Of a stretch of 64,000 nucleotides of DNA, positions 15,831-58,229 are shown in pieces. Made by a program: the position numbers and the translations under genes. Source of the DNA: Octopus sinensis (Eukaryota). The notes under the pieces are model-generated. The model made no database searches. It worked only from the letters and a program-made list of their open reading frames with translations, and was not told where the DNA came from. How positions within the stretch are numbered: position 1 is the stretch's first letter; each line of letters begins with the position of its first letter. The stretch spans positions 119,164,001 through 119,228,000 of the forward strand of contig NC_043000.1 of NCBI RefSeq assembly GCF_006345805.1, in the 5' to 3' direction.

Positions 15831-16778
15831 TTATGTACATTTCCAACTTTTGAATTGAGAGATATTGTTCAATGGACTGGATTCTGAATCCATTGCAAAG
15901 CTTGAGACACAGTCACAATCCATACATCTTTATTGCGAGAACACTTCTTTCAGAAATTTCTTCAATGGTTTTAAATGTTCATAAGCCATGGTGAATGCAA
16001 AAATATACCGAAAGGCGCCTTATTTTTTTGTAATGGGCGATTAAAATTTCTCTCAAGAATTGTAGAACTTCCATTGGCTTTTTAGAAACTCTGCATGCAT
16101 CAGCATTGAACAAGGACTTCCTTCTGCTATTTGTACAAACGCGTAAGTGGACTTCCCATAATCCTGGATATGATTTCTCTGGACAGAATTTAAGTGTGCA
16201 ATATTTTTTGTTAACTGGGTAATCAAGTGTAAAGGGCCATGTCGGTACCTCTGCAGTAGAAGTAACCAATCCTGTTACCATCGAACTGTCATAAGAAAAT
16301 CCATATTCGGCCAAAGTTTCGAACTGAGCATCTTTTCCCAATGCAAAAACGTGTGAGCGCATTCCTCGAATATCGTTTTCGGCAATATTTGCCCTTATAC
16401 AAAGTTCTTTGTTTCATACCAACTATTTCATTGGTATAAACCACACACGACTGGCATTCAACCAGTAACTAACGGGAAGTTTATGCGTTATACTATGAGA
16501 TGCTATCTCATGTCCATTGTTATATAATTCTTTCACGCTGTTTATAATTAGTGTATAATCGCCGGAAACAAAAAATGTTGATTTGATAGGACAGCCGTTT
16601 GGATTGGTTATGCCAGAATTAAACAATCGTCTGTAATAAGCCATATTAACCTCATCAACTCCGTCGTCAAATGTCAATAGAATTATCTGCGGAGTTGCAT
16701 ACGTTGACAGTGAGCCTGGAATTTCAGGACCAGGACATTTACAATTCGGTAACTTGCAATATTCTGGACGACAGGGAC
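15831..16778 (-). pseudogene. CDA-A1 exon 2: chitin deacetylase catalytic domain, frameshifted as assembled (pseudogene or consensus errors)
   Basis: Co-linear with 30051..30995 with the same acceptor (16779). More than ten 1-2 bp indels relative to A2 split it into ORFs 16423..16677 and 15979..16362. Confidence 0.6.
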
Positions 16779-18329
16779 CTGCAAAGTAAAAACAAAAAAA
16801 AACATCAAATCAAAAGATGGACTCTATTTTTTAATAAAGGATACGAGCACATATGTCAATAACTCTTATATGGATTGAGACCTAGAGCCATTGATCTTTT
16901 ACAATAATAAAATAGAAAATAATAAAATAAATCATGAACAGTTTCAGTAAGAAGCATTGGTACGGGGAAGGGGGTAAAAATGCAACTATGTAAAGAATAG
17001 GAGAAATCTGTGGAATCAGAGAAATCTGCACAAAAATTTCATTTGTCGTGGCGAGAAAAAATAGGGTGTCGATTTTGAAGGTTGTTCTTCAACAGAGAAC
17101 GGATGCAGAATGAGCGGTGCTTTATATACATCGTATCTGCAGGGGCGTTTTTGGAGAAGTATATTTGGAAACCATGAACTGTCATTCACGAATCTGATTT
17201 CATATAACATGTTTTGCTTATAAAGAAAAATTTCTTATAAACATAGTTTTCTAGTTTTTAAACCTATTTGGAGTCATCGTTTTCGGTGACATTTTTATAT
17301 ATGGAAAATATTACAAAAAATACTTTCATTACAAGTTTTCGCTCTCATTGCTTCCGGTGGCTTTAGTTGTACATATTTAAGACCCAAAATTCCGATTTTC
17401 AGGGTTTACTTGAGCAATAAAAAGAATATAAAGAGAATTGCTCAAGAAAACAATCTGCCCTCCAATCCGAGAATGAAGCCATGACTTAATGATTATAAGC
17501 CCCGAGTCCTAGCAACAAAAACCACGCTTTACGAAGGCACATACGGTTTTTGTTTTATTTCAAGATCAAACCAGAATTGCAATCAATGAACTAAGTACAA
17601 GGTCCTAAACTAATCAAAATTTCATACTGATACCCACTAGAAATCTAAATTGTGCTAAACGAATTAAAATTCCAATTGATATCCGTTATCCTGCAAGTTT
17701 TACGCGAGGGATTTTAATCTACAATTTTGCAATTGGCAAAAGCACGTCATTAATCCCATCATCTGGGCACGGACTAGGTACTATTTACCACTGTGTTAAA
17801 TGCCAATGTCCATTATTCGCTTACTCAGAATAAGACTGGATCATTTCTATCTCAGTTTTTCAAATTTTGAGATAAAGTGAAACATTTTCAAATTTGGTAT
17901 AGATATAATTTATAACATTGGATCTGATTTTGTTGATCACATATTCCAGAAAAAGTTTAGAAATATGTTACAGAGGTTTAAAAGTTGGATAATTTTTACC
18001 CAATCAGGAACAGGATTTGGACGTTGGCATTTTCTGTCTAATAGCTGTCTATCATAATATTACGACTACGAATTTATATTACACAAAATGAAGCGAAACT
18101 AAGGTGGAAGTTGTAAAAAGGTTGGAATTTTTAAAATGTTTTAATGAATAAAGTGAACGGTGGAATACGTATTAAACAATTTTAAAAAGAAAAAACCTCA
18201 ATGAAAAGTTTTTGTGGAAAATTACAAAAAAATAAGTCTGTACTCTATACCATAGTATAGCTTATTTCATATAAACAATACATTTTTATAGCGAAAATTC
18301 AATATGAAAATTACAATTTTCGTATCACT

Positions 18330-18790
18330 TGCGCCATAAGCTCGCAAATACGAGTCATAGAACGATGGATCCCATCGATAGACGTATGCATTCATCAAGC
18401 GTGCCCTGACTCCGAGATGGCACCGAATAAAGAAAACGTCATGTCTGGTCTCGCGACACACACCTCCAAAAACTAACTGCTCAGGTAGAAAACACCCTTC
18501 TTCGGTTGTATTTACATCTTGACTTTTTCGTCTATCTCAACAATTTTCCCAGGGACCACCTATCTGAACTGGGTTGCAGAGCAGGTCCTCCGTACATAGC
18601 TGTTGAAATAAATGTGTGCAGTTGTTCAGAACGGGACTGAAGTCAATTTCTTGACCCACGAGTAATGGAAAAGCAGTACAGTCCCAAGAGGAGGAGTGCC
18701 ACCTTCCAAGTACGCATCCTTAACTGCATCCTCTCGATTTTCAATTTCTCTAACATACTCGAAAGATTAGGTTGCTATTTAGGTTGAAAA
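18330..18790 (-). mobile_element. Merlin (IS1016/IS1595-related) transposase remnant in the CDA-A1 intron; second copy at ~32545-33000 in the A2 intron
   Basis: Frameshifted QIGGPGKIVEIDE...KYNRRRV...QLVFGGVCRETR...D..LRAY matches the Merlin DDE signature. Confidence 0.75.
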
Positions 18791-19787
18791 GGTTCAGAAA
18801 AACACTCAGTTCAAAATTATGTAAATGCGGTGGTAACGGAACAGCAACCGAAAATACCCATTTCTTAAAAAAGACACACAGGTGACAATGACAAACATTT
18901 GATAATACAAACGTTCAGAAGATAGGCACTCGTCAAAGAAAATAGACAGAATAAAATGCACATGGTTGTATTAGCAGACAATTGCATGGCTGTTACTGTG
19001 GAAACAAACAAAGTGTCTGTGGCGTTCGACTGGCTAAAATTACCCAAAATTTGCAAATTTTATAAGCTACTAACTTTTTATTTATTAAATTATAGCAAAA
19101 ATGGCTTCCAATTCCATAATTAGCATACAAAATTATATCAGTACACCAAATTTTAAAATGATTGGAAGAAAAACTTTTTAAAAATAGAAAACTGGCAGAA
19201 ACAGAAAAGATCCAAACTTCTCGTGGTTTTAGATGAAAATAACCATGCCTCAGTATCAGAACGATTAATTAGACAAATAAAAACATTTTTAAAAATCATT
19301 TCAGCATCTTTTACCATAAATGGATAAGATTTTGAAGTTTGGGAATAGAAGCTCCGTCAAAGTCTCATGCCACGCAGAAAGGAAAATGGATAAAATTTTT
19401 CTTACATTTTTTTTTTTTTAGTATTTCTGTATTTCATACAACAATAATTACGATTCTGCAAATTCCTTTCCCCCAAAATTTCAATCTCCCACAATTTTTT
19501 ACCTTCTCTACTCTTTACCTTCCCCATAAGGTATGGAAATTCGAGGAATTGCTTTTCTAAAATTCCGCCAAGAGTTTTAAATAGTGAACTCGTTAGAAAT
19601 AACATGTTACGTTTGATTACAATGTTACGTATGCTTGACATAATATATTGCTTAAATTTTCATTCCAAATGAATAACTTCAATACTTCGACGTTTTCACA
19701 AAACTCATAGCTACATATCTAACTCGTATCTAAAATCTACATGTCTACAAATCGAGCTGTATCTAAAATAATCTATTTAACATATAT

Positions 19788-20228
19788 ATGTTTCTTTATT
19801 ACCCACAAGGGGCTAAACACAGAGGGGACAAAGAAGGACAGACAAACGGATTAAGTCGATTACATCGACCCCAGTGCGTAACTGGTACTTAATTTATCGA
19901 CCCGAAAGGATGAAAGGCAAAGTCGACCTCGGTGGAATTTGAACTCACAACGTAACGGCAGACGAAATACGGCTACGCATTTCGCCCGGCGTGCTAACGT
20001 TTCTGCCATCTCGCCGCCCTAAAATATGTTTCTTTACTACTCACAAGGGGCTAAACACAGAGAGGGCAAACAAGGACGGACAAATGGATTAAGTCGATTA
20101 CATCGACCTCAGTGCGTAACTGGTACTTAATTTACGTTCTGAGTTCAAATTAAGTACCAGTTACGCACTTCGCCCGACGGCTACGCATTTCGCCCGACGT
20201 GCTAACGTTTCTGCCAGCTCGCCGCCTT
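19788..20228 (-). mobile_element. SINE family A dimer in the CDA-A1 intron (second copy at 34021-34460); one monomer rearranged
   Basis: Reverse complement of family A twice, flanked by TCTATTTAACAT direct repeats. Confidence 0.85.
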
Positions 20229-20590
20229 TCTATTTAACATGTATACAAGATCGTTAACAGGTGGAGAATTATAATTTGAACAGTAAACTCATTAATGCTT
20301 TGTACCGTTTAATATTTTAAAGAAAGGTCGTCTGTAAGATGCAAAATGCTTACATAAAACAATATATAATTGCTTGGAGTAAGAAATATTCTAAGCTTAA
20401 AAGGTAAGAGAAAGAACAGCAGTTTTGAATAAATACCAAATTCAGAGTGTTGTAAACTGGATTATATATAACTCTAGTTCGACAATCAGAGATCACTTAT
20501 TTCTTATTGAGTTACTACTGTGGCAAGAGATAAAAACTTCACTGAAAGAAGAGATTTGGTACATAAAATTCTTGAAAATATATTACTCAC

Positions 20591-21125
20591 CAGTGAGTTG
20601 TGGTTTCTTGGTAGTTTGAGGATGAGTTGATGGTTTCTTGATAGTTTGAGGATGAGTTGATGGTTTCTTTGTAGTTTGAGGATGAGTTGATGGTTTAGAA
20701 GTAGTTTGAGGATGAGTTGATGGTTTAGAAGTAGTGGTTGACAAAATTTTACTTAGTAATGAACTTCGCTTGAAAGTAACTCTGTGAGTGGTAACTACAG
20801 ACTTTGTAGGTGGTTTGGCAGTAGCTCCAACATCATTGGTGGTTTTTGACTGATCTCTCTGTGATTTGCAATGGTCAACGCCTGGCCAGACACAGACTTT
20901 AAGGCTTGGATTGAATTCTAGTCCTTTACCACAATTTTTCAATATACCGTGTTTAGGTCCTGTACAATGATAGAATTTGGAATCGTCTGTTTCATGGCAC
21001 TTATAGTCACCGGTTTCTGTACAGCTTTCCTGAGAATATGATGGAATAATAAATAAAACATGGAGCAAAATTAATGACAGCCAAAATGTGTGTTGGCGTC
21101 TCTGGTAAAAACCTTGAAAGCCCAT
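20591..21125 (-). CDS. CDA-A1 exon 1: signal peptide + CBM14 + Thr/Ser/Pro-rich linker
   Basis: ORF 20583..21125 is the same length as the A2 exon with the same G|GTGAGT phase-1 donor. It differs by four substitutions I could see (GLEF/GLAF, TIKK/TTKK and two silent). Confidence 0.85.
20600..20740 (-). repeat. 30-bp coding tandem repeat (TT[S/K]KPSTHPQ x4 plus partial), mucin-like linker; second copy at ~34835-34975
   Basis: GTAGTTTGAGGATGAGTTGATGGTTT repeated every 30 nt. Confidence 0.9.
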
Positions 21126-24100
21126 TTCGATGAACTATTTGTCAATATAAATGTATATATATATATATATTGATTAAAGTGTTAAGCAGAAAGTCTGAAA
21201 CTTAGGCTGCGACTGAAATTGTTTGATTTCTTCATCGCTTTTAAACACTTTGTAGCGTAAAACAAACCACAATGGCTATTAACGGGGAAGCGGGGGGAAA
21301 CAGGTATTAATAACCAGTCAGGAAGTATCGCCCACCATTTTCTCTCACGATCAGTGCAGAGAAGAGCCCTGTTGTAAAGAAAGATAGAGAGCAGGTGAGA
21401 GAGAGAAAGGAAGAGTGAGAGAGAGTGAAAAGGAGAGAGAAAGAGAGAGAGAGCAGGTTTGTGACAGATTTTTTCCTATTTTTGAGAAGAGAATTGCTTG
21501 AGAGTGTAAGGTAGAGTGCAATGTCATGCTTCACAAAGACGTTTTAATTGCAGAAACTACTTCTCAAAATTAGTATCTTAGTATCCTCTATACCAGTGAT
21601 TACCAAAATTTTTCAGTACCAAGTACCCCTTTTATTTGAATGAGTTTTCCAACGGACCCAATGATATTGAAAGGTTTCTCAGCTTAACGTGTTTACAGAT
21701 CCCTAGTAACTCCTTTGCGAACAACCCACATATACGATATTCTCGGGCACTGCACAATCGCATGCAGAGCCACAGGTCAAGCTCAGTCATGCGTTGAAAG
21801 AAAGAATTTGGCCTAGAGACTTAAAACATTTTTCTATCAATCTCTTTATACATTAATACTTTAGAGACACACAAGCACTCACACACTAGCAGATACATAC
21901 ATACATACATACATACATACATACATACATACATACATACATACATACATACATACATACATACATACATACATACGCACACACATACATAGGAATATCC
22001 TGTTGTTTCCCTGTTGTGTCTGTCCCCCCAAAAGCAGCTACAAATTTTTAATTGAATTACTTGGTGTCTCTTAAGTGACAAAATCTATTTTTAATGATAA
22101 AAAGTGGATCCATTACAGTTTTTAAGAAGCCAAGACACTTTTACATATTGATTGCTAGGAGGTGAGGCGCGCCTAGCCTTCTTAGCAAGGGGCTCCAATA
22201 TCGAGATACCTTGGGCAATTGCTCTTTCTGGGCCCCTATAAATCCTTTGAAATATATACACACACAAATAATGATGTAAACTGATTTGGTCACTTAAACG
22301 ATATGAATCTCTTTTTATGAAATTACCAATTTTCAATACCCATTCCCCCCACTACAACTTCGCTTTGTCTAAAGCAAGATACGACAAGGAAATTACTTTT
22401 CTTAGTCCTGACAGTACAGCACTTAATTATAGAAAAAGTAATGAGATTTTAAGTGATAGACGGATTACAAACTTACTTGGTCGGGAAAACATACCAACTA
22501 GAAAAGCATCCAGCTAACCCATCAATTTGAATTTTTAAAAAATAAGCAACAACAGGAAATTAGATGCTACAACAAGAACTTTGGTTTAGATAATAAGGGT
22601 AGTGGAGGGAATGGACAAGTTGCTTGAGCCGGTAAGCATATGAAAAATACTGGTAATAGAGTCATACCTAATAATCAAGTCATGATTTTGAAAGGCGTTG
22701 AGAGAACAGGTAGATTCCGCCCTTACATGCGCCGTAAGTCTGAAAATAAGGACTTGATCTGGTATAACGTTCCCTTCAACTGTGCCATATCCATAAACAT
22801 ATAATGGAAATCTATGACAATTTTAGAAAAAAACTTTCCTGCTTCCCATAGATACAACAGAATTTTTTCCCGTAAGAGAGAATTTCATACTCTACTCTCC
22901 CAAATATGGGTACCATCATAGCAAGGTCAAATAAAAAGAATATTAAATTAGCAAGAAGTAGTAATAATAATAATGTTAGGAGAGTATTGTAGTTCGTTTG
23001 AAGCATTGTGTATTGTTTGTAAAGAATAAAAAGTTTTGAATGGTATAACAATGCACTATAATACAAGCAATGGGCTATATATCATCCATAGTCTGATATG
23101 ATATTTCGGAATAATATTCCTTCTTCAGATATTCTTAGATGGAGTCGCTGCTATAATCGGTTTTCCAACGGCTTTTCTTTTTTCTTTTCTTTTTTTTTGA
23201 AGCGTCTCAGCAGTGGTCTCACGATGCTCCTTCCGGAATTCCTCATGAGAAGTGCATGAGGTTGGCCATGTCTCAATCTCGTGTGTGCTGGTGCATCCGT
23301 AGCGCTGCTTCTAAGTTACGTATTATACGTATTATACGCAGCTTCCTTTTTTCCCTTCTTTTTTTCTTTTTTTTTTTTCTTATAAACAACAGATGAACAT
23401 ATTATCAAAAGTGAGCCTACACGCATCCAGATGTATATAAATAATGTATTGATTACCAATCTCCAGCCTGTTGTTAATTTGGGGCCCTAGTCTGCGTATG
23501 AGTATAACTTCCTTAATTCTTAAATTACCCAAAATGTCTTTCCTTGGCCTCAATTGTGACTGTTATGCTTTTGTCGGTGTTCCGGCATCTGGCTAGATGT
23601 TTTCTGAAGGAGGAAGCTCTCGTGTTCAGATGTTCTTTGATGCGGACGTGTAACGATCTTGTGCTACTCACATAGAACTTGTTGCATTTGTTACATTGTA
23701 TTCTATACACAACATTAACCCGTTGGCATAAATCTGTCACGGATGGGACAAGTTTGTTAGTGTACGTTGATTGTTGTCCCTTGTCAACACTAACTTGAAC
23801 CCCTCCAATGTGAATAATAATATTAATGTTGACGTAGAAAATAGAAACAGCAGTACCAATGCTTCTAATATATACAATATAGACTGTAGCCCTGAGGTCT
23901 ATACTAGCACAGGGATTACTGATTCGCCTGATTATGCTGGAATGAGTGTGAATGATACAACAATTGAAGGATGGAGAGATATAGCCGGATATGAAAATTA
24001 TACATACAATATTAGTAGCATGGTTAATATTAATAGTAATGTTAATAACAATAATGGTATGAATATCAATAATATTAATAGTAGTAATTTTCCTAGTTGT

Positions 24101-27061
24101 AATTGTAGGGTTAAATCTGACTGTCCATTATTAGGCCGATGTCTAATCCAAAACGTAATCTATATGTGTACTATCACAACTGTAGCTGGTAACTGGTAAC
24201 TTAGCTTCTTCTCCTCTCTTCTTCTTCTTCTTCTTCTTCTTCTTCTTCTTCTTCTTCTTCTTCTTCTTCTTCTTCTTCTTCTTCTTCTTCTCCTTCTTCT
24301 TCATCATCATCATATACAGGATATTCAATAAATATGAAAAAATGCATTAATAACCATTTTTCATCTTTTAGGCTAAAAAATAAGGCCAATTGTACGTCCT
24401 TATCTAGCAAGATTTGGGAAATGAAGGAAAGCGGAATCGGATTTAGCTTTAAATGGGATAGTATAAAGAAAGCGCAACTTTATAGAGACGGTCGGTATGG
24501 GTGCGAGCTGTGCTCTATGGAAACTTATGAAATTTTTAAGTATAGGGACAAGAGCAACTTGGTTAATTATAGATTATACCTAAGGGTATCATGCGTACAT
24601 AGTGTTACCCGTACATTTAAGTATTTTCGAAATTAGCGTTTATAGGTGCTGCACTTGAACCTGGACACGAGAAATTAATTTTAGTGTCGTATATGATGTG
24701 AACTTACCCTCTAGTACTATATATAATAAGTTATATATATTTTCTTACTGTTCTCTATAATTTCTTATTATTGCGTTTTCTTATTTTGATATCTTTACCT
24801 ATTAACTTCTCATCTCTTGTAAGTTATTAATGTTCATAAAGAGAAATATAAACTTTGTAGTTACTTGAGTCTAGAAGAGTTGATTATAACTTGCCCATTT
24901 CTGTATATTTGCATGTGTGCACATAGTTAAATATGTGTATGTATCTATGCACAACTTATTTTTCTGATTTGTTTCTTCTGATTCTTAGCTTATAACTAAT
25001 ATGAAGATAGCATGATTTATGGCACCAGTATTCCATAAGTAAATACCAAGAGCAATCTTTATAGAAATCACCTCATAAATAAATAATTAAGTACAGGTAT
25101 GAATATTAAACTAATTCTATGTAATCTTCCCTTTCTAATGTTGAAAATTGATATATATATATATAGGCGCAGGAGTGGCTATGTGGTAAGTAGCTTGTTT
25201 ACCAACCACATGGCTCTGGGTTCAGTCCCACTGCGTGACACTTTGGGCAAGTGTCTTCTACTATAGCCTCGGGCCGACCAAAGCCTTGTGAGTGGATTTG
25301 GTAGACGGAAACTGATAGAAGCCCGTCGTATATATGTATATATATATGTGTGCGTGTGTGTGTTTGTCCCCCTACCATTGCTTGACAACCGATGCTGGTG
25401 TGTTTATGTCCCCGTTACTTAGCGGTTCGGCAAAAGAGACCGATAGAAAAAGTACTGGGCTTACAAAAGAATAAGTCTCGGGGTCGAGTTACTCGATTAA
25501 AGGCGGTCCTCCAGCATGGCAGCAGTCAAATGATTGAAACAAATAAAAGAGAGTAAAGAGTAAGAGATATATATACACAGTTTATCTATTCTGGTTATAA
25601 TATCATTTTTAGTAATCTTCAGTTTTATCTTCAACAACATAACAATATTGATTATATACAATCATCCTTTGTAACCCATGATAATTTCCTCTGTATTAAC
25701 ATCATAGGTTTTATTAGCGTCTTGCCCCTTTAACTGGTAATTAACATCTTGATTTAGGGTCTTATGACCACACCCAATACTTATGACCACACCCAACAAT
25801 AAACTGTCAACTCACTCTGTCTATCCAGATACACTGTCCTCTAGCCTTAGATTGGATAGTTGACTAATAAATTAAAAGTGAACCACAATCATTCACAAGC
25901 TATGACCCTAACAAACTTCATAGTTCTTAGGAGTGTAGTATATTCTGAGTCGCATTAGTAGCAACAAGGACTTTCTCCCTCCTCTTGCTGTTAGAGAATT
26001 TGAGTAAAATTATATTAATCGTCCAACTGATTAAAAATATCTACTTATTTATGAAGCTGAGAATAGCCTTGCATTTAAATTAATGTCATGATTGCATTAT
26101 TCAATTAAATGGAACCGCTTGAAACGGTTGTACTGCATCACTACTTGACATCCCGTTGCTTATTTTGATTTTATTCACCTTACTTTGAGCTGTACGGATA
26201 ACACTGCACTGGCTTGGTGCTTCGGACTTAACTCATGGCGGGGACCCATTATATATTCAGTGGACCCATTATACACAAGAATTAAAGTCTTAGAAAATTA
26301 CCAAATTTAAATCTCAAAACCCATCAATTTCTAATAATTGAATTTGGTGAGTTAGCAGAGAGTTTAAATAAATGACTGAAAATATCGATTCATAGATACA
26401 CTTTTGTAAATTTCAAATTTTGCTTTTCACACATCCACTTGTGGTGTTTGAATTTTCCTTCATTGTGAAAAGTACAATGAAGGAAAGGTGAGTGGGGTAA
26501 GACTGCTTCGTTTTAATGTGAGTTTCATATGTTTCAGAATGTAGCATAAGATAAAATGACAGAAAATTACGAAAAAGAAGAAACACATTTTTGTGGTTGT
26601 TGCTGTTGCTGTTGAGCGTAACGGTCTTCGTCCAGTGGGAGAAGTCCGAAACGTGGTCCTTTGCTATTCATAAGACCCGCAGAAGAGAAAGCAGATCAAC
26701 CCCGACACCGAGAGCATCGACGGATGGATGAATGCGCATCCAGGTTCGCATCCAGGTTCGGCGGTTGCGTAGGAAGTCGGGGATAAGAAACAGGAAGAAA
26801 GAGTGAAAGAAAGTTGGAGCGATAGAGTACAACAGAGGTCACCACCACCCTCTGCTTAAGCCTCGTGGAGCTTTAGGCGTTTTCGCTCAATAAACACACA
26901 CAACGCCCGGTCTGGGAATCGAAACCGTGATCCTCCGACCGTGAGTCCGCTGCCCTAACCATTGGGCCATTGCGCCTCCACTGTGGTTCTTGCTGTTACA
27001 AAAACATGATGCGCCCGCACGCGTATGTGTGTGTGTGTATGTGTGTGTGTGTGTGTGTATG

Positions 27062-27095
<34 letters not shown>

Positions 27096-28109
27096 ACAGA
27101 AAGAGAGAGAGAGAGAGTGGGGTGAAGATACCAACATTTAAAAGACAGGAATTTTAAAATTTTGTTTTTTCTTCCCTTCATTGTTTTGCAATGCGTGAAA
27201 AAAAAAAGCGAGGAACACCCGACAAAAACAGGTAAAATTAAAACAACTATTTCCAAAAGTCTGTTTTTTCCAGTTTCCAGCCAGAGGAGGTGGGGCTTAA
27301 TGAATAATATTTACTGAATCTTTGACTTTCAAGAAAATATATTTTATGTAAATGTTCACTACTTTGCCAAAACTATTTGGCAGATACACAGGTTTTATTG
27401 CCTATTAAACAAACGCTGTATTTTGTATACAATGTGTGAGATCACCAGCAACACTTACTTGCAAAAAATTTGAGTGCACATCTGCACAATGCCCTTAATA
27501 TTGCAATGCTATTTACAAGACCGCATCTTTCGTGAATTCTGTAACCAAAATGAAGCGGTTGAACGCTTTGTAATTCACACAGAGATAAGACGGTTATGAA
27601 AAGGTAATTATCGGTGTCATTTTGTGGCACTTTGGTATACTGTTGTCTCATTCCAAGCTAACAACAATCTCAGCCGACAAATGGTTGCAGCTAAATGCGA
27701 TATATTTTATTTATCAGATATATTTGATGAAATTAATTTGATTAACAAACAGCTCCAAGGAGAAAAACTCTGATCTCCTATCCTCCTAAGGAGCTATTAC
27801 TGCATTTCTAGGGTAAGTACAAATCTAGAAGATAAATATTGTATGTTATGTATTATTACAATATGTATATATATACTAATTATATACGTTTTTATTAATT
27901 TTGCAATTTACTTAATCATTGACATTTTATTGTTATTTTAATTTTAATATTTCTATTACATGTAATATTCTAGATAGTGTAATTTAATTGTTAATTTTGA
28001 ATTGAAAAAAGTGGGTGGGGGGGGGTTTCTAATTTTTTATATATAAATTATATTGTGTGAAATTTGATTTAGTATTTCTAAATTGAATTTTTCTCCTCCT
28101 AAGTATAAT

Positions 28110-28149
<40 letters not shown>

Positions 28150-28170
28150 CACACACATATATATATATAC

Positions 28171-28363
<193 letters not shown>

Positions 28364-28583
28364 TGTATATATGTATGTATATATATACATATATATCAGC
28401 CGAAATTGCGAGGATGATCCGGTTCTTGACTGAAGATTGAAGGCTTCGAATGTCCCGTCCGTGTTTTTTGTATCGTCTTCTAAATGTTTTACGTTCTTGT
28501 TCCAGTTTGTATTTTTCTACATACAATATATATATGTATGTATATATATATACATACATATTCATATATATATGTACATATAC

Positions 28584-28636
<53 letters not shown>

Positions 28637-28731
28637 TATATGTATATATATATAATTATATATAGGTATGTATATATATGCACATATATATATATGTATG
28701 TATATATATATGTATGTATATATATATACAT

Positions 28732-28774
<43 letters not shown>

Positions 28775-29246
28775 CATATATACATACACCTGATAGCTTC
28801 GTCGTTTCTTTACTACTCTGACATGTATAGATGTTTTCAACATTTTTCTCCCTGTAAACACATTTAATGGAATTATGATGCAATGATCCAAGGGAGGTCC
28901 ACTGCTGGGATTTTAGCAAAAACACTGGACTGTCAGTATTTTAAATTCTAAGTTTTTTTCCAAATCGAAAAAGAGAGAAACTTTTAGGATTTAAGAAGGC
29001 GGGTGTTAAAAAAGTGATTTTTAGTTATTAGCTCGTAATTGTATGTATACCCGTCTGTTACTCTTTTACTCTTTTACTTGTTTCAGTCATTTGACTGCGG
29101 CCATGCTGGAGCACCGCCTTTAGTCGACTTATTCTTTGTAAGCCCAGTACTTATTCTATCGGTCTCTTTTGCCGAACCCGTAAGTGACGGGAACGTAAAC
29201 ACACCAGCATCGGTTGTCAAGCAATGCTAGGGGGACAGGCACACAA

Positions 29247-29337
<91 letters not shown>

Positions 29338-30042
29338 CGACATGCTTCTTTCAGTTTCCGTCTACCAAATCCACTCACAATGCATTGGTCGGCCCGTGGC
29401 TATAGCAGAAGACACTTGCCCAAGATGCCACGCAGTGGGACTGAACCCGGAATCATGTGGTTGGTTAGCAAGCTACTTACCACACAGCCACGAACACAAA
29501 TTCGCAAAAAGTTTCTTAAAATTCCAGAAATGGAAACATAGGGTTTATATGGGGTTATTAAACCAGAATTCCGCTCATTTCATACATATATGGTGGTTGT
29601 CTCCTCCTCCTTATGCAGACTTTGACCGCCTCCTGTACCTACTTCTTCGAACCATTATGGCATCTGATGTGGCTTTTTAAACCAGACAAGGCTCTGAAAA
29701 GACACCCACATAGATTTGGACCACCAAGAGCTGCCGATAAGTTCTGGTTTTTGTGGATCTTAAAACGTGGATCTTAGATTCGCATATTTTGTTTGATATT
29801 TATGTCATGCAATAAAAAATTTCAGTTGATTTCTTAAGAACAATAAGAATATATTTCTATTTTTCAATTTATTCAGTTAAGCGTTAAAACATTATAAATT
29901 AAATAGAATGTTATGGAAAAGTTTGATTTAAAACAAAATGTAAAAAAACTCTCACAGAATGGTTAGTTCATGAGAATAAATAAATATTTAAATAGTTCAA
30001 TTGGTAGTCCTTAAATACCCATCACTTAGTTTGTTTTTTTTT

Positions 30043-30995
30043 TCACATGTTTATGTACATTTCCAACTTTTGAATTGAGAGATATTGTTCAATGGGAACT
30101 GGATTCTGAATCCATTGCAAAGCTTGAGACACAGTCACAATCCATACATCTTTATTGCGAGTAACTTCTTTCAGAAATTTCTTCAATGGGTTTAAATTGT
30201 TCATAAGCCATGGTGAATGCAAAAATATACCGAAAGGCGCCTTATTTTTTTTGTAATGGCGATTAAAATTTTCTCTCAAGAATTGTAGAACTTCCATTGG
30301 CTTTTTAGAAACTCTGCATGCATCAGGCATTGAACAAGGACTTCCTCTGCTATTGTACCAACGCGTAAGTGGGACTTCCCATAATCCTGGATATGATTTC
30401 TCTGGACAGAATTTAAGTGTGCAATATTTTTTGTTAACTGGGTAATCAAGTGTAAAGGGCCATGTCGGTACCTCTGCAGTAGAAGTAACCAATCCTGTTA
30501 CCATCGAACTGTCATAAGAAAATCCATATTCGGCCAAAGTTTCGAACTGAGCATCTTTTCCCAATGCAAGAAACGGTGAGCGCATTCCTCGAATATCGTT
30601 TTCGGCAATATTTGCCCTTATACAAAGTTCTTGTTTCATACCAACTATTTCATTGGTATAAACCACACGACTGGCATTCAACCAGTAACTAACGGGAAGT
30701 TTATGCGTTATACTATGAGATGCTATCTCATGTCCATTGTTATATAATTCTTTCACGCTGTTATAATTAGTATAATCGCCGGAAACAAAAAATGTTGATT
30801 TGATAGGACAGCCGTTTGGATTGGTTATGCCAGAATTAAACAATCGTCTGTAATAAGCCATATTAACCTCATCAACTCCGTCGTCAAATGTCAATAGAAT
30901 TATCTGCGGAGTTGCATACGTTGACAGTGAGCCTGGAATTTCAGGACCAGGACATTTACAATTCGGTAACTTGCAATATTCTGGACGACAGGGAC
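30043..30995 (-). CDS. CDA-A2 exon 2: chitin deacetylase catalytic domain (CE4 polysaccharide deacetylase, arthropod/mollusc CDA type)
   Basis: Acceptor TTTTACTTTGCAG| at 30996, phase 1, reading (G)PCRPEYCKLPNCKC...PQIILLTFDDG. Motifs present: NPNGCPI, GHEIASHSITH, RSPFL, YDSS, WPFTLD, YPGLWEVP, APFGIFLH. An extra base near 30095 shifts the last ~15 codons; the corrected end would be PVPLNNISQFKSWKCT* at 30051, giving ~492 aa spliced. Confidence 0.92.
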
Positions 30996-33900
30996 CTGCA
31001 AAGTAAAAACAAAAAAAACATCAAATCAAAAGATGGACTCTATTTTTTAATAAAGGATACGAGCACATATGTCAATAACTCTTATATGGATTGAGACCTA
31101 GAGCCATTGATCTTTTACAATAATAAAATAGAAAATAATAAAATAAATCATGAACAGTTTCAGTAAAAGAAGCATTGGTACGGGGAAGGGGGTAAAAATG
31201 CAACTATGTAAAGAATAGGAGAAATCTGTGGAATCAGAGAAATCTGCACAAAAATTTCATTTGTCGTGGCGAGAAAATAGGGTGTCGATTTTAGAAGGTT
31301 GTTCTTCAACAGAGAACGGATGCAGAATGAGCGGTGCTTTATATACATCGTATCTGCAGGGGCGTTTTTGGAGAAGTATATTTGGAAACCATGAACTGTC
31401 ATTCACGAATCTGATTTCATATAACATGTTTTGCTTATAAAGAAAAATTTCTTGTAAACATAGTTTTCTAGTTATTTAAACCTATTTGGAGTCATCGTTT
31501 CGGTGACATTTTTTATATATGGAAAATATTACAAAAAATACTTTCATTACAAGTTTTCGCTCTCATTGCTTCCGGTGGCTTTAGTTGTACATATTTTAAG
31601 ACCCAAAATTCCGATTTTCAGGGTTTACTTGAGCAAAAGAATATAAAGAGAATTGCTCAAGAAAACAATCTGCCCTCCAATCCGAGAATTGAAGCCATGA
31701 CTTAATGATTATAAGCCCCGAGTCCTAGCAACAAAACCACGCTTTACGAAGGCACATACGGTTTTTGTTTTATTTCAAGATCAAACCAGAATTGCAATCA
31801 ATGAACTAAGTACAAGGTCCTAAACTAATCAAAATTTCATACTGATACCCACTAGAAATCTAAATTGTGCTAAACGAATTAAAATTCCAAATTGATATCC
31901 GTTATCCTGCAAGTTTTACGCGAGGGATTTTAATCTACAATTTTGCAATTGGCAAAAGCACGTCATTAATCCCATCATCTGGCACGGACTTAGGTACTAT
32001 TTACCACTGTGTTAAATGCCAATGTCCATTATTTCGCTTACTCAGAATAAGACTGGATCATTTCTATCTCAGTTTTTCAAATTTTGAGATAAAGTGAACA
32101 TTTTCAAATTTGGTATATAGATATAATTTATAACATTGGATCTGATTTTGTTGATCACATATTCCAGAAAAAGTTTAGAAATATGTTACAGAGGTTTAAA
32201 AGTTGGATAATTTTTACCCAATCAGGAAACAGGATTTGGACGTTGGCATTTTCTGTCTAATAGCTGTCTATCATAATATTACGACTACGAATTTATATTA
32301 CACAAAATGAAAGCGAAACTAAGGTGGAAGTTGTAAAAAGGTTGGAATTTTTAAAATGTTTTAATGAATAAAGTGAACGGTGGAATACGTATTAAACAAT
32401 TTTAAAAAGAAAAAACCTCAATGAAAAGTTTTTTGTGGAAAATTACAAAAAAATAAGTCTGTACTCTATACCATAGTAATAGCTTATTTCATATAAACAA
32501 TACATTTTTTATAGCGAAAAATTCAATATGAAAATTACAATTTTCGTATCACTTGCGCCATAAGCTCGCAAATACGAGTCATAGAACGATGGATCCCATC
32601 GATAGACGTATGCATTCATCAAGCGTGCCCTGACTCCGAGATGGCACCGAATAAAGAAAACGTCATGTCTGGTCTCGCGACACACACCTCCAAAAACTAA
32701 CTGCTCAGGTAGAAAACACCCTTCTTCGGTTGTATTTACATCTTGACTTTTTCGTCTATCTCAACAATTTTCCCAGGGACCACCTATCTGAACTGGGTTG
32801 CAGAGCAGGTCCTCCGTACATAGCTGTTGAAATAAACATGTGTGCAGTTGTTCAGAACGGGACTGAAGTCAATTTCTTGACCCACGAGTAATGGAAAAGC
32901 AGTACAGTCCCAAGAGGAGGAGTGCCACCTTCCAAGTACCGCATCCTTAACTGCATCCTCCTCGATTTTCAATTTCTCTAACATACTCGAAAGATTAGGT
33001 TGCTATTTAGGTTGAAAAGGTTCAGAAAAAACACTCAGTTCAAAATTATGTAAATGCGGTGGTAACGGAACAGCAACCGAAAATACCCATTTCTTAAAAA
33101 GACACACAGGTGACAATGACAAACATTTGATAATACAAACGTTCAGAAGATAGGCACTCGTCAAAGAAAATAGACAGAATAAAATGCACATGGTTGTATT
33201 AGCAGACAATTGCATGGCTTGTTACTGTGGAAACAAACAAATGTGTCTGTGGCGTTCGACTGGCTAAAATTACCCAAAATTTGCAAATTTTATAAGCTAC
33301 TAACTTTTTATTTATTAAATTATAGCAAAAATGGCTTCCAATTCCATAATTAGCATACAAAATTATATCAGTACACCAAATTTTAAAATGATTGGAAGAA
33401 AAACTTTTTAAAAATAGAAAACTGGCAGCAACAGAAAAGATCCCAAACTTCTCGTGGTTTTTAGATGAAAATAACCATGCCTCAGTATCAGAACGATTAA
33501 TTAGACAAATAAAAACATTTTTAAAAATCATTTCAGCATCTTTTACCATAAATGGATAAGATTTTGAAGTTTGGGAATAGAAGCTCCGTCAAAGTCTCAT
33601 GCCACGCAGAAAGGAAAATGGATAAAATTTTTCTTACATTTTTTTTTTTTTAGTATTTCTGTATTTCATACAACAATAATTACGATTCTGCAAATTCCTT
33701 TCCCCAAAATTTCAATCTCCCACAATTTTTTACCTTCTCTACTCTTTACCTTCCCCATAAGGTATGGAAATTCGAGGAATTGCTTTTCTAAAATTCCGCC
33801 AAGAGTTTTAAATAGTGAACTCGTTAGAAATAACATGTTACGTTTGATTACAATGTTACGTATGCTTGACATAATATATTGCTTAAATTTTCATTCCAAA

Positions 33901-34823
33901 TGAATAACTTCAATACTTCGACGTTTTCACAAAACTCATAGCTACATATCTAACTCGTATCTAAAATCTACATGTCTACAAATCGAGCTTGTATCTAAAA
34001 TAATCTATTTAACATATATATGTTTCTTTATTACCCACAAGGGGCTAAACACAGAGGGGACAAAGAAGGACAGACAAACGGATTAAGTCGATTACATCGA
34101 CCCCAGTGCGTAACTGGTACTTAATTTATCGACCCCGAAAGGATGAAAGGCAAAGTCGACCTCGGTGGAATTTGAACTCAGAACGTAACGGCAGACGAAA
34201 TACGGCTACGCATTTCGCCCGGCGTGCTAACGTTTCTGCCATCTCGCCGCCCTAAAATATGTTTCTTTACTACTCACAAGGGGCTAAACACAGAGAGGGC
34301 AAACAAGGACGGACAAATGGATTAAGTCGATTACATCGACCTCAGTGCGTAACTGGTACTTAATTTACGTTCTGAGTTCAAATTAAGTACCAGTTACGCA
34401 CTTCGCCCGACGGCTACGCATTTCGCCCGACGTGCTAACGTTTCTGCCAGCTCGCCGCCTTTCTATTTAACATGTATACAAGATCGTTAACAGGTGGAGA
34501 ATTATAATTTGAACAGTAAACTCATTAATGCTTTGTACCATTTAATATTTTAAAGAAAGGTCGTTTGTAAGATGCAAAATGCTTACATAAAACAATATAT
34601 AATTGCTTGGAGTAAGAAATATTCTAAGCTTAAAAGGTAAGAGAAAGAACAGCAGTTTTGAATAAATACCAAATTCAGAGTGTTGTAAACTGGATTATAT
34701 ATAACTCTAGTTCGACAATCAGAGATCACTTATTTCTTATTGAGTTACTACTGTGGCAAGAGATAAAAACTTCACTGAAAGAAGAGATTTGGTACATAAA
34801 ATTCTTGAAAATATATTACTCAC

Positions 34824-35358
34824 CAGTGAGTTGGGGTTTCTTGGTAGTTTGAGGATGAGTTGATGGTTTCTTGGTAGTTTGAGGATGAGTTGATGGTTTC
34901 TTTGTAGTTTGAGGATGAGTTGATGGTTTAGAAGTAGTTTGAGGATGAGTTGATGGTTTAGAAGTAGTGGTTGACAAAATTTTACTTAGTAATGAACTTC
35001 GCTTGAAAGTAACTCTGTGAGTGGTAACTACAGATTTTGTAGGTGGTTTGGCAGTAGCTCCAACATCATTGGTGGTTTTTGACTGATCTCTCTGTGATTT
35101 GCAATGGTCAACGCCTGGCCAGACACAGACTTTAAGGCTTGGATTGAATGCTAGTCCTTTACCACAATTTTTCAATATACCGTGTTTAGGTCCTGTACAA
35201 TGATAGAATTTGGAATCGTCTGTTTCATGGCACTTATAGTCACCGGTTTCTGTACAGCTTTCCTGAGAATATGATGGAATAATAAATAAAACATGGAGCA
35301 AAATTAATGACAGCCAAAATGTGTGTTGGCGTCTCTGGTAAAAACCTTGAAAGCCCAT
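34824..35358 (-). CDS. CDA-A2 exon 1: signal peptide + CBM14 (peritrophin-A/ChtBD2) + Thr/Ser/Pro-rich linker
   Basis: ORF 34816..35358 starts with ATG, has a hydrophobic stretch (FWLSLILLHVLFIIPSYS), six Cys with FYHC..C..GL.FNP.LKVC.WP..C, and 10-aa TT(S/K)KPSTHPQ repeats. It ends at a G|GTGAGT donor after 535 nt (phase 1). Confidence 0.88.
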
Positions 35359-35869
35359 TTCGATGAACTATTTGTCAATATAAATGTATATATATATATT
35401 GATTAAAGTGTTAAGCAGAAAGTCTGAAACTTAGGCTGCGACTGAAATTGTTTGATTTCTTCATCGCTTTTAAACACTTTGTAGCGTAAAACAAACCACA
35501 ATGGCTATTAACGGGGAAGCGGGGGGAAACAGGTATTAATAACCAGTCAGGAAGTTTCGCCCACCATTTTCTCTCACGGTCAGTGCAGAGAAGAGCCCTG
35601 TTGTAAAGAAAGATAGAGAGCAGGTGAGAGAGAGAAAGGAAGAGTGAGAGAGAGTGAAAAGGAGAGAGAAAGAGAGAGAGAGCAGGTTTGTGACAGATTT
35701 TTTTCTATTTTTGAGAAGAGAATTGCTTGAGAGTGTAAGGTAGAGTGCAATGTCATGCTTCACAAAGACGTTTTAATTACAGAAACTACTTCTCAAAATT
35801 AGTATCTTAGTATCCTCTATACCAGTGATTACCAAAATTTTTCAGTACTAAGGACCCTCTTTTATTTGA

Positions 35870-36780
35870 ATGAGTTTTCCAACGGACCCAAGGATATTGA
35901 AAGGTTTCTCAGCTTAACGTGTTTACAGATCCCTAGTAACACCTTTGCGAACAACCCACATATACGATATTCTCGGGCACTGCACAATCGCATGCAGAAC
36001 GGTTTCGTCGTTTTTCCCGCACTATGGGCACGTGAGCAGGCAAGAAGCACTATGCCTTGCGAGTTTATCGCGACTGGTAAAGCCCCTCGGCAACATTGCC
36101 AAGCCAGAGACCTTTATAAATTATCCAAATGCCCCGGCTCGAATGCCCTTCTGAACAGGCCGGCGAGTTGAGCATCGTCGAGGCCCAGGGTCTTCCCCAG
36201 GACGTTGTCGCACTGGCCCTCTACCAACCCTCTATAGAAGAATGAAGTAGAACCCTCGACGCTGGCATTACCCGTGTAAGAGAGGAGCACGAGAGCCTGA
36301 CGGCACTCGGTTTGCCATGCTCCTAATCTTGGTCTACGCTTGATCCGCAGTTCCAGTTCATCGAAACTAGTAAACCTCGGAAGCATCAGTTTAACGAGCG
36401 GAGACCACACCTGCTCACTATCCAGATAGAGTCACAGATGCCTCAATTTCGGCGCATGTCTGCGCGACAACCAAGGCATCCCTAGCCCACCCTTTAGCAG
36501 GTGTTAGCAGTAGATAGAGCGCCTTGCAAACGGACCACTGCCCCTCTACAAAAAGCGGAAGAGCAAGCGCTCCAGCTTTCTTAACCACGAAGCGAGACAA
36601 GGGACGACGGTTATGTGGTAGGTAATCACAGATGTGATAAATACATTCGCGACCTCCGCCCTCTCTTTCAGAGATAGCCACCACTCGGACTAGGTCCGAG
36701 TTAGGCGGGTCATCCTGTTCGCCACCTTGCTCCAGTTCTTCTCTATCTGGATATCCGGTCCAAACCAGACCCCTAGCCAA
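35870..36780 (-). mobile_element. Tx1/L1-clade LINE remnant (post-RT region + zf-RVT Zn finger)
   Basis: VWTGYPD..., then LDN.*RSLAWQCCRGALPV.DKL.RH...TCP*CGKNDETVLHAIVQCP; its last ~130 bp are also present at the end of duplication copy 1. Confidence 0.7.
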
Positions 36781-39826: not shown

Positions 39827-39949
39827 AATAGGAAGAAAAATAATGGTTGCAAGACCTCATCGTCCTAAGATACAGGCCATATTTTACCCATGTGGATCAA
39901 TTAGAGATCCTTGTTTCTGTTGTATTTTTTCCCTTTTCAAGCCTAGCCA

Positions 39950-40234
39950 GGCTCATGGGCCCGGTTTCCTGGTTTCTGTGGCGTATGTGTTCCCCCTCCC
40001 CAGGTGGACGGGACGCCAGTCCTTCGCAGCGTTACTCAAGATACAGGAATAAATAGTGAGAGAAATTTGGGGCGAAAGAGTGCAACAGGGATCGCCACTA
40101 CCCGCTGCCGGAGCCTCGTGGAGCTTTAGGTGTCTTCGCTCAAAAAACACACACAACGCTCTGTCTGGGAATCGAAACCGCGATCCTCCGACGGCGAGTC
40201 CGCTGCCCTAACCACTGGGCCATTGCGCCTCCAC
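39950..40234 (-). mobile_element. SINE family C copy; further copies at ~41930-42126, ~44545-44803 and ~51480-51770
   Basis: GGAGCCTCGTGGAGCTTTAGGTG...GGGAATCGAAACCGCG...CCATTGCGCCTCCAC. Confidence 0.8.
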
Positions 40235-45752: not shown

Positions 45753-45982
45753 GTTTCTTTACTACCCACAAGGGACTAAACATAGAGGGGACAAACAAGG
45801 ACAGACAAACGGATTAAGTCGTTTAAATCGACCCCAGTGCGTAACTGGTACTTAATTTATCGACCCCAAAAGGATGAAAGGCAAAGTCGACCTCGGCGGA
45901 ATTTGAACTCAGAACGTAACGGCAGATGAAATATGGCTACGCATTTCGCCCGGCGTGCTAACAATTCTGCCAGCTCGCCGCG
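45753..45982 (-). mobile_element. SINE family A copy with 14-bp TSD
   Basis: GCGTAGGGATATCT at 45739-45752 and 45980-45993. Confidence 0.9.
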
Positions 45983-52169: not shown

Positions 52170-53146
52170 TTAACACTTCCAAGCGTCGAAGTTTGAATTA
52201 TTTTTCATTTTCTGCGGATTCTTTATCCATTCCAAAGCCTTTGATATGCTCAATATCCAAACATTTTCTATTTCAGTAATTTCTTCTAGAAATTGTTTCA
52301 AGACTTCAAACTTATACGGTTCAGTAAGAACCCAATTCACATGAAGAAACAGACCAGCTGGAGCACGAGTTGTATAATAATTCTTGTATAACGCTTCCTT
52401 CAAAAACTTGACATATTTTTTTTTGTTGTTTGGTTGATCACAACCATCGTAGAGAGAACAAGGTTTTTTATTGTTGTCATACCAACGATTTACGGGTATT
52501 TCCCAAAGGCCAGGATAGGACTTTGTTGGGCATTTCTCATTCATACAAGCCTTGCCTGAAACGCCGGGCTTTTCTTGTTCAAGCTTACTCTTTAAAGGAG
52601 TATCTAGTGTGAATGGCCAGTACTGTTCTCTGCCCTGATCGTTGTCTGTACCCATAACTATCGAAGAATCCCAAACATACCCCAAATCTTTCAGGACCTG
52701 AAATTGAATGTCACCTCCCATTTGAAGAAAAGGTGAACGAAAACCTTTAATGTCACTTTCAGGAATGCCAGATTTTTTAACAAGGTTATTTTTTATTCCG
52801 TTTATTTCGTCTCGGTATTCATCATAAGTCTTATTACTCCAAGAAGCGACTGGAAATGCATGGGACATGGTGTGACTGGCCATTTCATGTCCATCGTTGT
52901 ACATTTCTTTTGAAAAAGTATAATTATTTTCACCAGAAATAAAAAATGTGAAGCTGATAGGACATCCGTTAGGGTTTTTTAATTCAGACTTTGACAATTC
53001 TCGATAATATTTAATATTTTTTTCAGTGAAGCCGTCGTCAAAAGTAACCAAAACTATTTGTGGAATTTCATCGCGTGAAAATCCCTTCGGCATTTCACTT
53101 GTCACGCCTTTACATTCAGGGAGTCGACAGTCGGCGACAGAAAGCC
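52170..53146 (-). CDS. CDA-B exon 2: diverged chitin deacetylase catalytic domain, intact
   Basis: ORF 52170..53105 extends to acceptor TTTTTCTCTTTCCTCTCTAG| at 53147 (phase 1). Motifs: TFDDG, NPNGCPI, GHEMASHTMSH, RSPFL, WDSS, WPFTLD, YPGLWEIP, LFLH; ends FDAWKC*. Confidence 0.93.
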
Positions 53147-54620: not shown

Positions 54621-54804
54621 TTTCCTTCGTTTTTCCACCATCATTTTCTTTGTTTATTTTTCTATTTTTTTATGTTTTCCTTTTTCGCTTTGTCTTCTCC
54701 TTTTTTTCTATCACATGACACCGTAAAAATGATCAATCTGGTGTATTTGTTTTACTGGCCTAGCAAAGTATAAGGTTTCTCTCCCTAGGTGAAATGCTAA
54801 TGAA

Positions 54805-54887
<83 letters not shown>

Positions 54888-54888
<1 letters not shown>

Positions 54889-57435: not shown

Positions 57436-57539
57436 TAATACTAATAATAATATAATAATAATAATAATATAATAATAATAATATAAAAATAATAATAATA
57501 TAACAATAATAATAATGGAGATGTATAAATAGCTCCTAC

Positions 57540-57720
57540 TCTACGAAACTTTTTGTCTGTAAGTATGGGATCATGGAGAACCACAATGACTTTGAACAGT
57601 GACAATGAATCCCTAAATGCTGGAGATGTAAGAATTTCATGTGGCATTTTCCATGGTGACTCTCTATCACCACTTCTCTTTTGTCTAGCCTTAATACTTT
57701 TCTCAAAATTGCTCTTTTTG
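57540..57720 (+). mobile_element. Short R4/Dong RT fragment, same subfamily as the 49.6-51.4 kb element
   Basis: ATTTCATGTGGCATTTTCCA.GGTGACTCTCTA shared with the 5' end of the 51402 element; GIFHGDSLSPLLFCLAL. Confidence 0.7.
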
Positions 57721-57724
57721 TAAA

Positions 57725-58117
57725 TCTCTCTCTATATAAAGCTGAAGTTGTCTGTGTATGGCAAGTTCGGTAGCCTTCAACTAACACTATCTCCTCCGAG
57801 ACCCTGCGGCACAAGTCGACCAAAATTGAGAGTATGATAGAAGAAGGGTTGCTCTTCATTTCGTAGAAGAAAAAATTCAAATCGGACCATGTTAACACCA
57901 AAAATTATTTACATCAAAAAGGTGCTTTTTTTCTATGAAAATCCCTATTTTTTACGATTTGTTTTTACTGCTGTGTCGCCATTTTTCGGTGTATTTCAAT
58001 CAGAAAAATGTTCACTTAAAGAGAATATAAGCTACATAATGCAAAATTTTTACTTTTCAAAAATTCCAATTCTAAAGGGTCAGAACAAACCCGAGCAACG
58101 CCGGGCGATACTGCTAG
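57725..58117 (+). mobile_element. Non-autonomous Helitron-like element (393 bp)
   Basis: A|TC...TATATAAAG start; 3' hairpin CCCGAGCAACGCCGGG followed by CTAG|T. Confidence 0.7.
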
Positions 58118-58144
58118 TTATGAGAAAATATATTATTTACTCAC

Positions 58145-58229
58145 CGAGTGACAACGACATTGATGCACTGAGAACCACTAAAACTACCAGAAAATAGTGA
58201 GTGCTTTCTGCAGATCTGTGTCCCATCAT
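58145..58229 (-). CDS. CDA-B exon 1 (predicted): signal peptide MMGHRSAESTHYFLVVLVVLSASMSLSL(G)
   Basis: 85 nt from ATG to a G|GTGAGT donor (phase 1), matching the phase-1 acceptor at 53147. Hydrophobic core FLVVLVVL. Spliced product is ~353 aa. Confidence 0.75.

Follow-up and report, generated by a model that had tools for sequence, protein, structure and literature searches.

Secreted CE4 chitin deacetylase genes with and without a CBM14 module in a cluster on an Octopus sinensis chromosome

Chitin deacetylases of the CE4 (NodB) family come with and without accessory modules, and the closest described counterparts of the genes reported here are insect and mollusc proteins. In Bombyx mori, BmCDA8 (PDB 5Z34; insect group V, gut) is catalytic-only, a signal peptide followed by CE4, and BmCDA1 (5ZNS/5ZNT) belongs to insect group I, the type in which CBM14 is combined with LDLa, as in the Sitophilus relative P0024 (PF00057 + PF01607); insect groups III/IV are CBM14-linked and free of LDLa. 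Among gastropods, the Patella caerulea protein SNE40_015346 (P0053) consists of a signal sequence, CBM14, a long low-complexity linker and CE4, in that order. The shell-matrix proteome of Lottia lists a chitin deacetylase (Lotgi1|181237; PMC3374290), a secreted mollusc enzyme from an extracellular matrix that contains chitin; the enzyme is also mentioned in other papers on mollusc shell proteomes and mantle transcriptomes. Here, we describe three CE4 loci, which we call A, B and C, in a stretch of 64 kb (hereafter the window) of the genome of Octopus sinensis, and we show that a CBM14-linked gene (B) and a catalytic-only gene (C) lie side by side in this cephalopod. An octopus has no external shell, so the structure targeted by its enzymes must differ from that of the Lottia shell-matrix deacetylases.

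The window covers positions 119,164,001-119,228,000 of chromosome CM016862.1 (GCA_006345805.1), and a window position p is found in the record at 119,164,000 + p; positions 1-31125 match this chromosome at 100% identity. It has a G+C content of 32-46%, is rich in microsatellites and contains no Ns, and no Rfam family reached the threshold in it. Searching it by tblastn with octopus and other chitin deacetylases, we found exactly 3 catalytic loci and 2 CBM14 exons, all on the minus strand, and no additional deacetylase exon. The three loci all have two exons, and their introns are of the GT-AG type, in phase 1 and at an identical position, just before a C-x-LP-x-C stretch. In every gene of the cluster exon 1 carries the targeting or binding parts and exon 2 the whole catalytic domain. 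Contamination and horizontal transfer are ruled out by the GT-AG introns, the octopus orthologues and the 100% match to an octopus chromosome.

Gene C, exon 1: 58229..58145, minus strand; ATG and signal peptide only (MMGHRSAESTHYFLVVLVVLSASMSLSL-G), donor G|GTGAGT, phase 1
Gene C, exon 2: 53146..52170, minus strand; complete CE4 domain, open frame intact, ending ...DAWKC and a stop; product of gene C, 353 aa
Gene B, exon 1: 35358..34824, minus strand; signal peptide, six-cysteine CBM14 (35101-35256) and 93-aa linker, donor G|GTGAGT, phase 1
Linker repeat of gene B: 34827..34959, minus strand; 30-bp unit in 4.5 copies, encoding (S/K)KPSTHPQTT, with a matching array in A at ~20594-20726
Gene B, exon 2: 30995..30043, minus strand; CE4 domain with TFDD, HSITH, RSPF, YDSS and IFLHSPW all in one frame; product of gene B, 495 aa as assembled
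Locus A, exon 1: 21125..20591, minus strand; intact copy of signal peptide, CBM14 and linker, with 4 substitutions and no indel relative to B; its start is the ATG of NCBI isoform X2 (P0002)
Locus A, exon 2: 16778..15831, minus strand; catalytic exon broken in the assembly, differing from B by 12 indels and two clusters of mismatches; product of locus A unreadable as assembled

We read this interval as part of an octopod cluster of secreted metazoan CE4/NodB chitin deacetylases in which C is intact, B is essentially intact and A is a 98% copy of B, and we give this reading a probability of roughly 0.85. Gene families of this kind are known, and other octopods have orthologues of these genes. 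The original prediction, which proposed three secreted deacetylase genes here, two with CBM14 and one with a signal peptide only, is confirmed as to these exons, and both of its outer coordinates are correct to the base: the ATG of gene C starts at 58229, and the ancestral-frame stop of A finishes at 15831. It had also spoken of a system, and in this respect it went too far: the locus is a cluster of paralogues, not a multi-part system.

Two architectures side by side

In gene C the leader before the catalytic exon is only 28 residues long, so that the signal peptide leads straight onto CE4, the composition of BmCDA8. The hydrophobic core of this leader has a Kyte-Doolittle mean of 2.84, and exon 1 matches the N-terminus of the O. 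bimaculoides protein 'chitin deacetylase 8' (P0050; tblastn, 90%). The motifs of the catalytic exon are TFDD, HTMSH, RSPF, WDSS and LFLHVNW. Its AlphaFold model (predicted local distance difference test, pLDDT, 91.2; predicted template-modelling score, pTM, 0.92) was matched by Foldseek to 5Z34 with a template-modelling score (TM) of 0.87 and a root-mean-square deviation of 2.0 A, and to 5ZNS/5ZNT with a TM of 0.86-0.88; bacterial and fungal CE4 enzymes come next in the list, after the Bombyx structures. Yet C and BmCDA8 share only 34% identity, C has an extra low-confidence loop (model residues 193-197), and it keeps only two of the four N-terminal cysteines. Fragmented reverse-transcriptase open reading frames lie inside the 5-kb intron of gene C (54794-57032, plus strand; RVT_1 Pfam match of 9.5e-15 for 55457-55879) and downstream of the gene (49765-51400, minus strand); they are probably what is left of non-LTR retroelements.

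Gene B has a signal peptide and one CBM14 upstream of CE4, i.e. the CBM14-linked, LDLa-free architecture of insect groups III/IV. The CBM_14 match in exon 1 scores 28 bits in Pfam (gathering cut-off 22.1; E 2e-6) and includes six cysteines, and a Pfam scan of exon 1 of A and B detected neither LDLa nor any other family besides CBM_14; exon 1 thus differs from the group I type. The 93-residue linker, partly made of the 4.5 copies of the 30-bp unit, is 25% Thr, 15% Lys, 14% Ser and 12% Pro in A and B. The part order of B is that of the Patella protein, and its catalytic domain is ~47% identical to that of Lottia gigantea LOTGIDRAFT_116769 (P0009), but the linker of the gastropod proteins is much longer than that of B.

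Both catalytic exons match Polysacc_deac_1 (PF01522) above the gathering cut-off of 23.1 bits (B, 35.9 bits, E 8e-9; C, 44.2 bits, E 2e-11). Against the Bombyx mori structures 5Z34 and 5ZNS/5ZNT they give E-values of 7e-48 to 4e-69, with 5Z34 at 4e-69 and 9e-55, and octopus homologues match them at 1e-150 to 1e-209, values that leave no room for chance similarity. The five motifs (TFDD, H(S/T)xxH, R-x-P-(F/Y), D-S-S and L-x-H) align to those of 5Z34 and 5ZNS, and BmCDA1 aligns end to end with the CE4 domain of B (6e-67), including a C-terminal ...F-x-x-W that is kept in B's conserved frame. The Asp-His-His triad and the catalytic Asp and His are present in both genes by alignment to BmCDA8 and BmCDA1, and the catalytic and metal-binding positions are kept across the octopod orthologues. 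The assignment of B and C as secreted-type CE4 chitin deacetylase homologues, already proposed from the motifs, is therefore borne out by these alignments and by the fold of the C model.

As assembled, B carries a 1-bp homopolymer insertion (CCC at 30094-30096) that shifts its last 14 codons, and PLNNISQFKSWKCT is replaced by IEQYLSIQKLEMYINM. The +1 frame still encodes the conserved ending PLNNISQFKSWKCT, with its stop at 30051-30053, and a similar ending is kept in O. bimaculoides (PLNNISQFRSWNCK), in a fourth paralogue, D, and in gene C (conserved ...W-K-C). With the conserved ending used, B exon 2 is 85.9% identical to the O. bimaculoides exon. The same homopolymer is one base short in A and one base long in B, opposite departures from the conserved frame. 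To judge from these sequences, the single frameshift of B is probably an assembly error rather than biology.

The chitin deacetylase family is large and well populated: a HMMER scan of 1.84 billion cluster representatives gave 2072 related clusters, 349 of them at E <= 1e-30. Many of these relatives (e.g. P0086) are 1000-2700 aa long with two to four CE4 stretches; these could be genuine multi-domain deacetylases, or gene models that fuse the members of tandem clusters like the present one. Above 44% identity to gene C the Argonauta orthologue stands alone among the representatives of this library, which is clustered at 50% identity. No exact full-length match to C, to B as assembled or to B with the conserved C-terminus was present in a collection of 15 billion proteins. 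When the CBM14/linker exon was used by itself as a protein query, nothing matched, though P0002 has its first 109 residues in common, and no O. vulgaris orthologue of B came to light in this way.

Orthologues and the age of the pair

The orthologue of C in O. bimaculoides is 'chitin deacetylase 8' (86% identity) and that of B is 'chitin deacetylase 7' (P0001; 84-86% identity, CBM14 exon included), and the orthologues in Argonauta (P0052, P0005) are 60-61% identical. These genes have the same two-exon structure as C and B. In Argonauta hians a C-type gene (40,111,243-40,115,999) lies 10.6 kb upstream of a single CBM14-type gene (40,126,618-40,136,166) on the same strand, both with two exons; unlike in O. 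sinensis, there is no extra CBM14-type copy within 10 kb. Since the same pair is found in the same order and orientation as in the window, the association of a C-type with a CBM14-type gene predates the split between Octopus and Argonauta.

In O. bimaculoides the two orthologues are ~26 kb apart on one chromosome (CM046604.1, 137.47-137.53 Mb) and apparently convergent, whereas they are head-to-tail in O. sinensis and Argonauta. The two O. bimaculoides stretches contain 4.9 and 6.7 kb of Ns and the CBM14 exon is split; the model of the B orthologue, unlike O. sinensis B, is shortened by assembly gaps. A scaffold misorientation and a real inversion explain the convergent arrangement equally well.

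We built a neighbour-joining tree of the catalytic domains (299 columns, 200 bootstraps), which is small and whose deep nodes are weak (16-44%). The octopod CBM14-type genes form a clade (100%) in which B, D and a further paralogue, E, split after Argonauta (96%), and the C-type genes form another (100%). Both clades fall beside gastropod sequences, including the CBM14-bearing Patella protein (44% and 16%); outside the octopods, B and its close paralogues have the gastropod CBM14-linker-CE4 clade as their nearest neighbour, at 44% bootstrap. The insect enzymes group elsewhere: BmCDA1 with a beetle LDLa-CBM14 protein (86%) and BmCDA8 with a crustacean CDA8-like protein of Oratosquilla (78%). 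Arthropod proteins of the CBM14 type (Gonioctena, Dermatophagoides Cda4) join the BmCDA1 clade (88%), and in this small tree B does not appear orthologous to them. Hence, the octopus genes of both types stand with mollusc enzymes, apart from insect groups I and V, within the weak support of the deep nodes.

The NCBI names deserve a comment here. Orthology of gene C with insect CDA8, as the name of its O. bimaculoides counterpart implies, is rejected, because the tree puts BmCDA8 with the crustacean protein and, at weak support, the C clade with mollusc sequences. The numbers '7' and '8' come from automatic annotation, not from experiments, and as the sequence comparisons indicate they are best-hit labels that carry no orthology with insect groups.

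The phase-1 intron common to B and C, together with the CBM14 carried by gastropod relatives, suggests that C lost CBM14 and the linker from its exon 1. An origin of the catalytic-only form independent of insect group V had been put forward from the window alone, and the small tree, with its deep nodes at 16-44%, and the common intron agree with it. One might speculate further that this loss was convergent with group V, and that C, whose place just upstream of a CBM14-tethered paralogue is older than the divergence of Argonauta and Octopus, could act with that paralogue as an anchored and free pair on the same chitin structure. We regard this broader scenario as tentative, and it could well be wrong.

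Paralogue E (P0006) was seen in O. vulgaris (OX597817.1, 48.28-48.30 Mb); it is of the CBM14 type, with a catalytic domain 61% identical to that of B. Its isoform X3 is annotated with a different first exon, and skips a CBM14 exon that is present in the DNA.

Locus A and the tandem duplication

The three genes of the original prediction are indeed three loci, but A and B are duplicate units and the catalytic exon of A is broken in the assembly. Self-comparison showed that 7671-21768 equals 21893-35998 at 97.97% identity over 14.2 kb; comparison without low-complexity masking gave the unit limits listed below.

Duplication unit 1: 7530..21767, no strand assigned; locus A, ~8.3 kb downstream of A and ~640 bp upstream of A's ATG
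Duplication unit 2: 21768..35998, no strand assigned; gene B; joined directly to unit 1 in head-to-tail orientation, neither filler nor Ns in between
Indel-rich patch of unit 1 against unit 2: 15527..19901, no strand assigned; includes the catalytic exon of A and its entire intron and leaves out exon 1; indel density 12.2 per kb, elsewhere 3.6
Unit 1 outside the patch: 37 indels in 10.4 kb (3.6 per kb); transitions to transversions among substitutions, 73:32
Unit 1 inside the patch: 45 indels in 3.7 kb (12.2 per kb); transitions to transversions among substitutions, 6:21

A and B are therefore the two units of one head-to-tail duplication, and A is not an independent gene. In the catalytic exon of A, TFDD and H(S/T)xxH (as HSITH) are still readable, but the exon is spread over three frames, RSHVF stands in place of RSPF, and the LxH stretch is out of frame with the other motifs. 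Thus motif 3, RxP(Y/F), and motif 5, LxH, are in frame in B and C only, and the expectation that all three genes keep the full set of motifs holds for these two and fails for A, with its 12 indels.

What broke this exon? The indels between the units are far from evenly spread: a segment of 3.7 kb out of 14.1 kb contains 45 of the 82 (binomial p = 4e-8; indels were counted over 15.8-19.5 kb, and transitions and transversions over a slightly wider 15.7-19.7 kb). Of those in 15.7-19.7 kb, 83% are changes in the length of a homopolymer or tandem unit, and many mismatches are clustered. Outside the patch the divergence, ~1%, looks like real divergence. The breaks in A more likely reflect a poorly polished long-read consensus than biology, because the differences between the units are patchy, homopolymer-biased and transition-poor, while neutral decay, which we judge the less likely cause, should not be patchy.

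A genuine, recently duplicated pseudogene, its catalytic exon decayed by slippage indels and its exon 1 surviving, would account for the 12 frameshifting indels and the loss of RSPF. It would also fit the fact that NCBI models bypass the catalytic exon of A, isoform X2 joining A exon 1 to the catalytic exon of D. But such decay should hit the whole unit evenly, whereas a single 3.7-kb patch, which includes the intron, has 3.4 times the indel density of the rest; this patch, unlike the remainder of the unit, is poor in transition-type substitutions, and exon 1 differs by just 4 substitutions and is free of indels. We consider a pseudogene unlikely, though by no means far-fetched.

The duplication itself may have arisen either in the genome or in the assembly. 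If the assembly had placed two haplotypes of one gene one after the other, the window would really contain only C and one CBM14-type gene. The ~1% substitution divergence and the transition to transversion ratio of 2.3 outside the patch are compatible with alleles, Argonauta has only one CBM14-type gene in the region read, only one B-type catalytic exon was seen in the gappy O. bimaculoides locus, and one of the units has a low-quality patch. Yet the head-to-tail junction is clean and lies inside a contig without Ns, and the CBM14 type has expanded in octopuses (D just outside the window, E in O. vulgaris), which makes a further real duplication plausible. An artefact of this kind therefore seems to us a possible but doubtful explanation. 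The A/B duplicate is very recent, and possibly artefactual, while C and the CBM14 type form one ancient pair.

Existing gene models of this region look chimeric when compared with the exons described above. The O. sinensis gene table holds two of them (L003 1-1083 and 10001-44210). The first, an 831-residue PF01522 product whose last exon is the catalytic exon of B, is too long for B alone (495 aa) and is probably a read-through fusion with C. The second is a gene spanning 34 kb, 'chitin deacetylase 7-like', with isoforms X1 and X2. Isoform X1 (P0003) is paralogue D, which lies 8-13 kb left of the window. Isoform X2 starts at A's ATG, uses two pieces of A exon 1 and then jumps to the linker and catalytic exon of D. 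Two of its internal junctions, the end of the first internal gap and the jump from A to D, lie in or beside linker repeats and lack GT-AG, which makes X2 doubtful as evidence of true splicing from A to D. As a weaker addition, the CBM14 exon of A might serve as an alternative first exon for D, but through junctions that lack GT-AG.

The O. sinensis models are thus already named 'chitin deacetylase 7-like', and their O. bimaculoides orthologues 'chitin deacetylase 7' and '8', so as far as annotation goes the cluster is not new, a point that the original prediction had left open. A literature search found no papers on cephalopod chitin deacetylases, and deacetylases go unmentioned in the genome papers of Argonauta and Nautilus.

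Several other features lie in the window. A short open reading frame with a GIY-YIG nuclease domain (23525-23740, minus strand; 5e-5, above the cut-off) stands beside low-complexity open reading frames; it may be the remnant of a GIY-YIG-bearing mobile element within the duplicated unit, with a presumed counterpart in unit 1. An interspersed repeat of ~235 bp, similar in appearance to a short interspersed element (SINE), occurs at 5729-5960, 19784-20017, 34016-34250, 37859-38094 and 45747-45981, at 88-95% identity and in both orientations; one copy lies in the intron of A and one in that of B. Exactly at the end of unit 2 begins a G+C-richer block (35999-41000; ~46% in 36-40 kb against ~35% around it), with several short repeat families also present elsewhere in the window; its two longest open reading frames have no Pfam match. 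Between locus A and paralogue D, within an intron of the isoform X2 model, a highly regular tandem array at 1642-3307 (60-bp unit, 27.8 copies, 96% matches) is open in several frames on both strands.

Predicted function and implications

By analogy with the family, the proteins of B and C would enter the secretory pathway, where CBM14 would tether B to chitin through a spacer that is probably O-glycosylated (mucin-like) and C would act untethered. In both, the CE4 domain is predicted to strip N-acetyl groups from chitin in a metal-dependent reaction. TFDD would supply the base (its first Asp) and a metal ligand (its second Asp), the two His of H(S/T)xxH would complete the metal site, and the acid would be the His of LxH. 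As to sites of action, the beak, radula, sucker cuticle or gut lining named in the original prediction are guesses, and chitosan would be a predicted product only.

Four points weigh against our view of the cluster. Some insect chitin deacetylases are little active in vitro, and intact motifs are no proof of activity. Signal peptides were assessed by hydropathy and orthologue models only, without a dedicated predictor. The C-terminal frameshift of B, if real, would remove the conserved terminal Cys. Lastly, three cases for A are not separable from this assembly alone: sequencing errors in a true duplicate, a genuine pseudogene, or a haplotype duplicated in error.

One might also argue that B and C are chitin-binding or structural 'pseudo-deacetylases', or that they deacetylate another substrate, without making chitosan. 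Their function is assigned by homology only, and in cuttlefish haemocytes one of the 20 most abundant transcripts is that of a chitin deacetylase (PMC7551771), which hints at roles outside hard chitinous structures. This is at odds with the retention of all catalytic and metal-binding positions in B, C and the octopod orthologues, and with the fact that the nearest solved structures are Bombyx mori proteins deposited as chitin deacetylases. We think it improbable, and favour deacetylases of the secreted type.

The practical value of this analysis is mostly corrective. Its useful outcomes are corrected gene models, a 14.2-kb duplication with an error-like patch, and an ancient pair made of C and a CBM14-type gene. 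Several cephalopod structures are based on chitin, among them the beak, radula, sucker lining, gut cuticle and stylets. A map of the cluster that sorts out the real and the intact copies and singles out the ancient pair would aid the study of how cephalopods tune their chitin materials.

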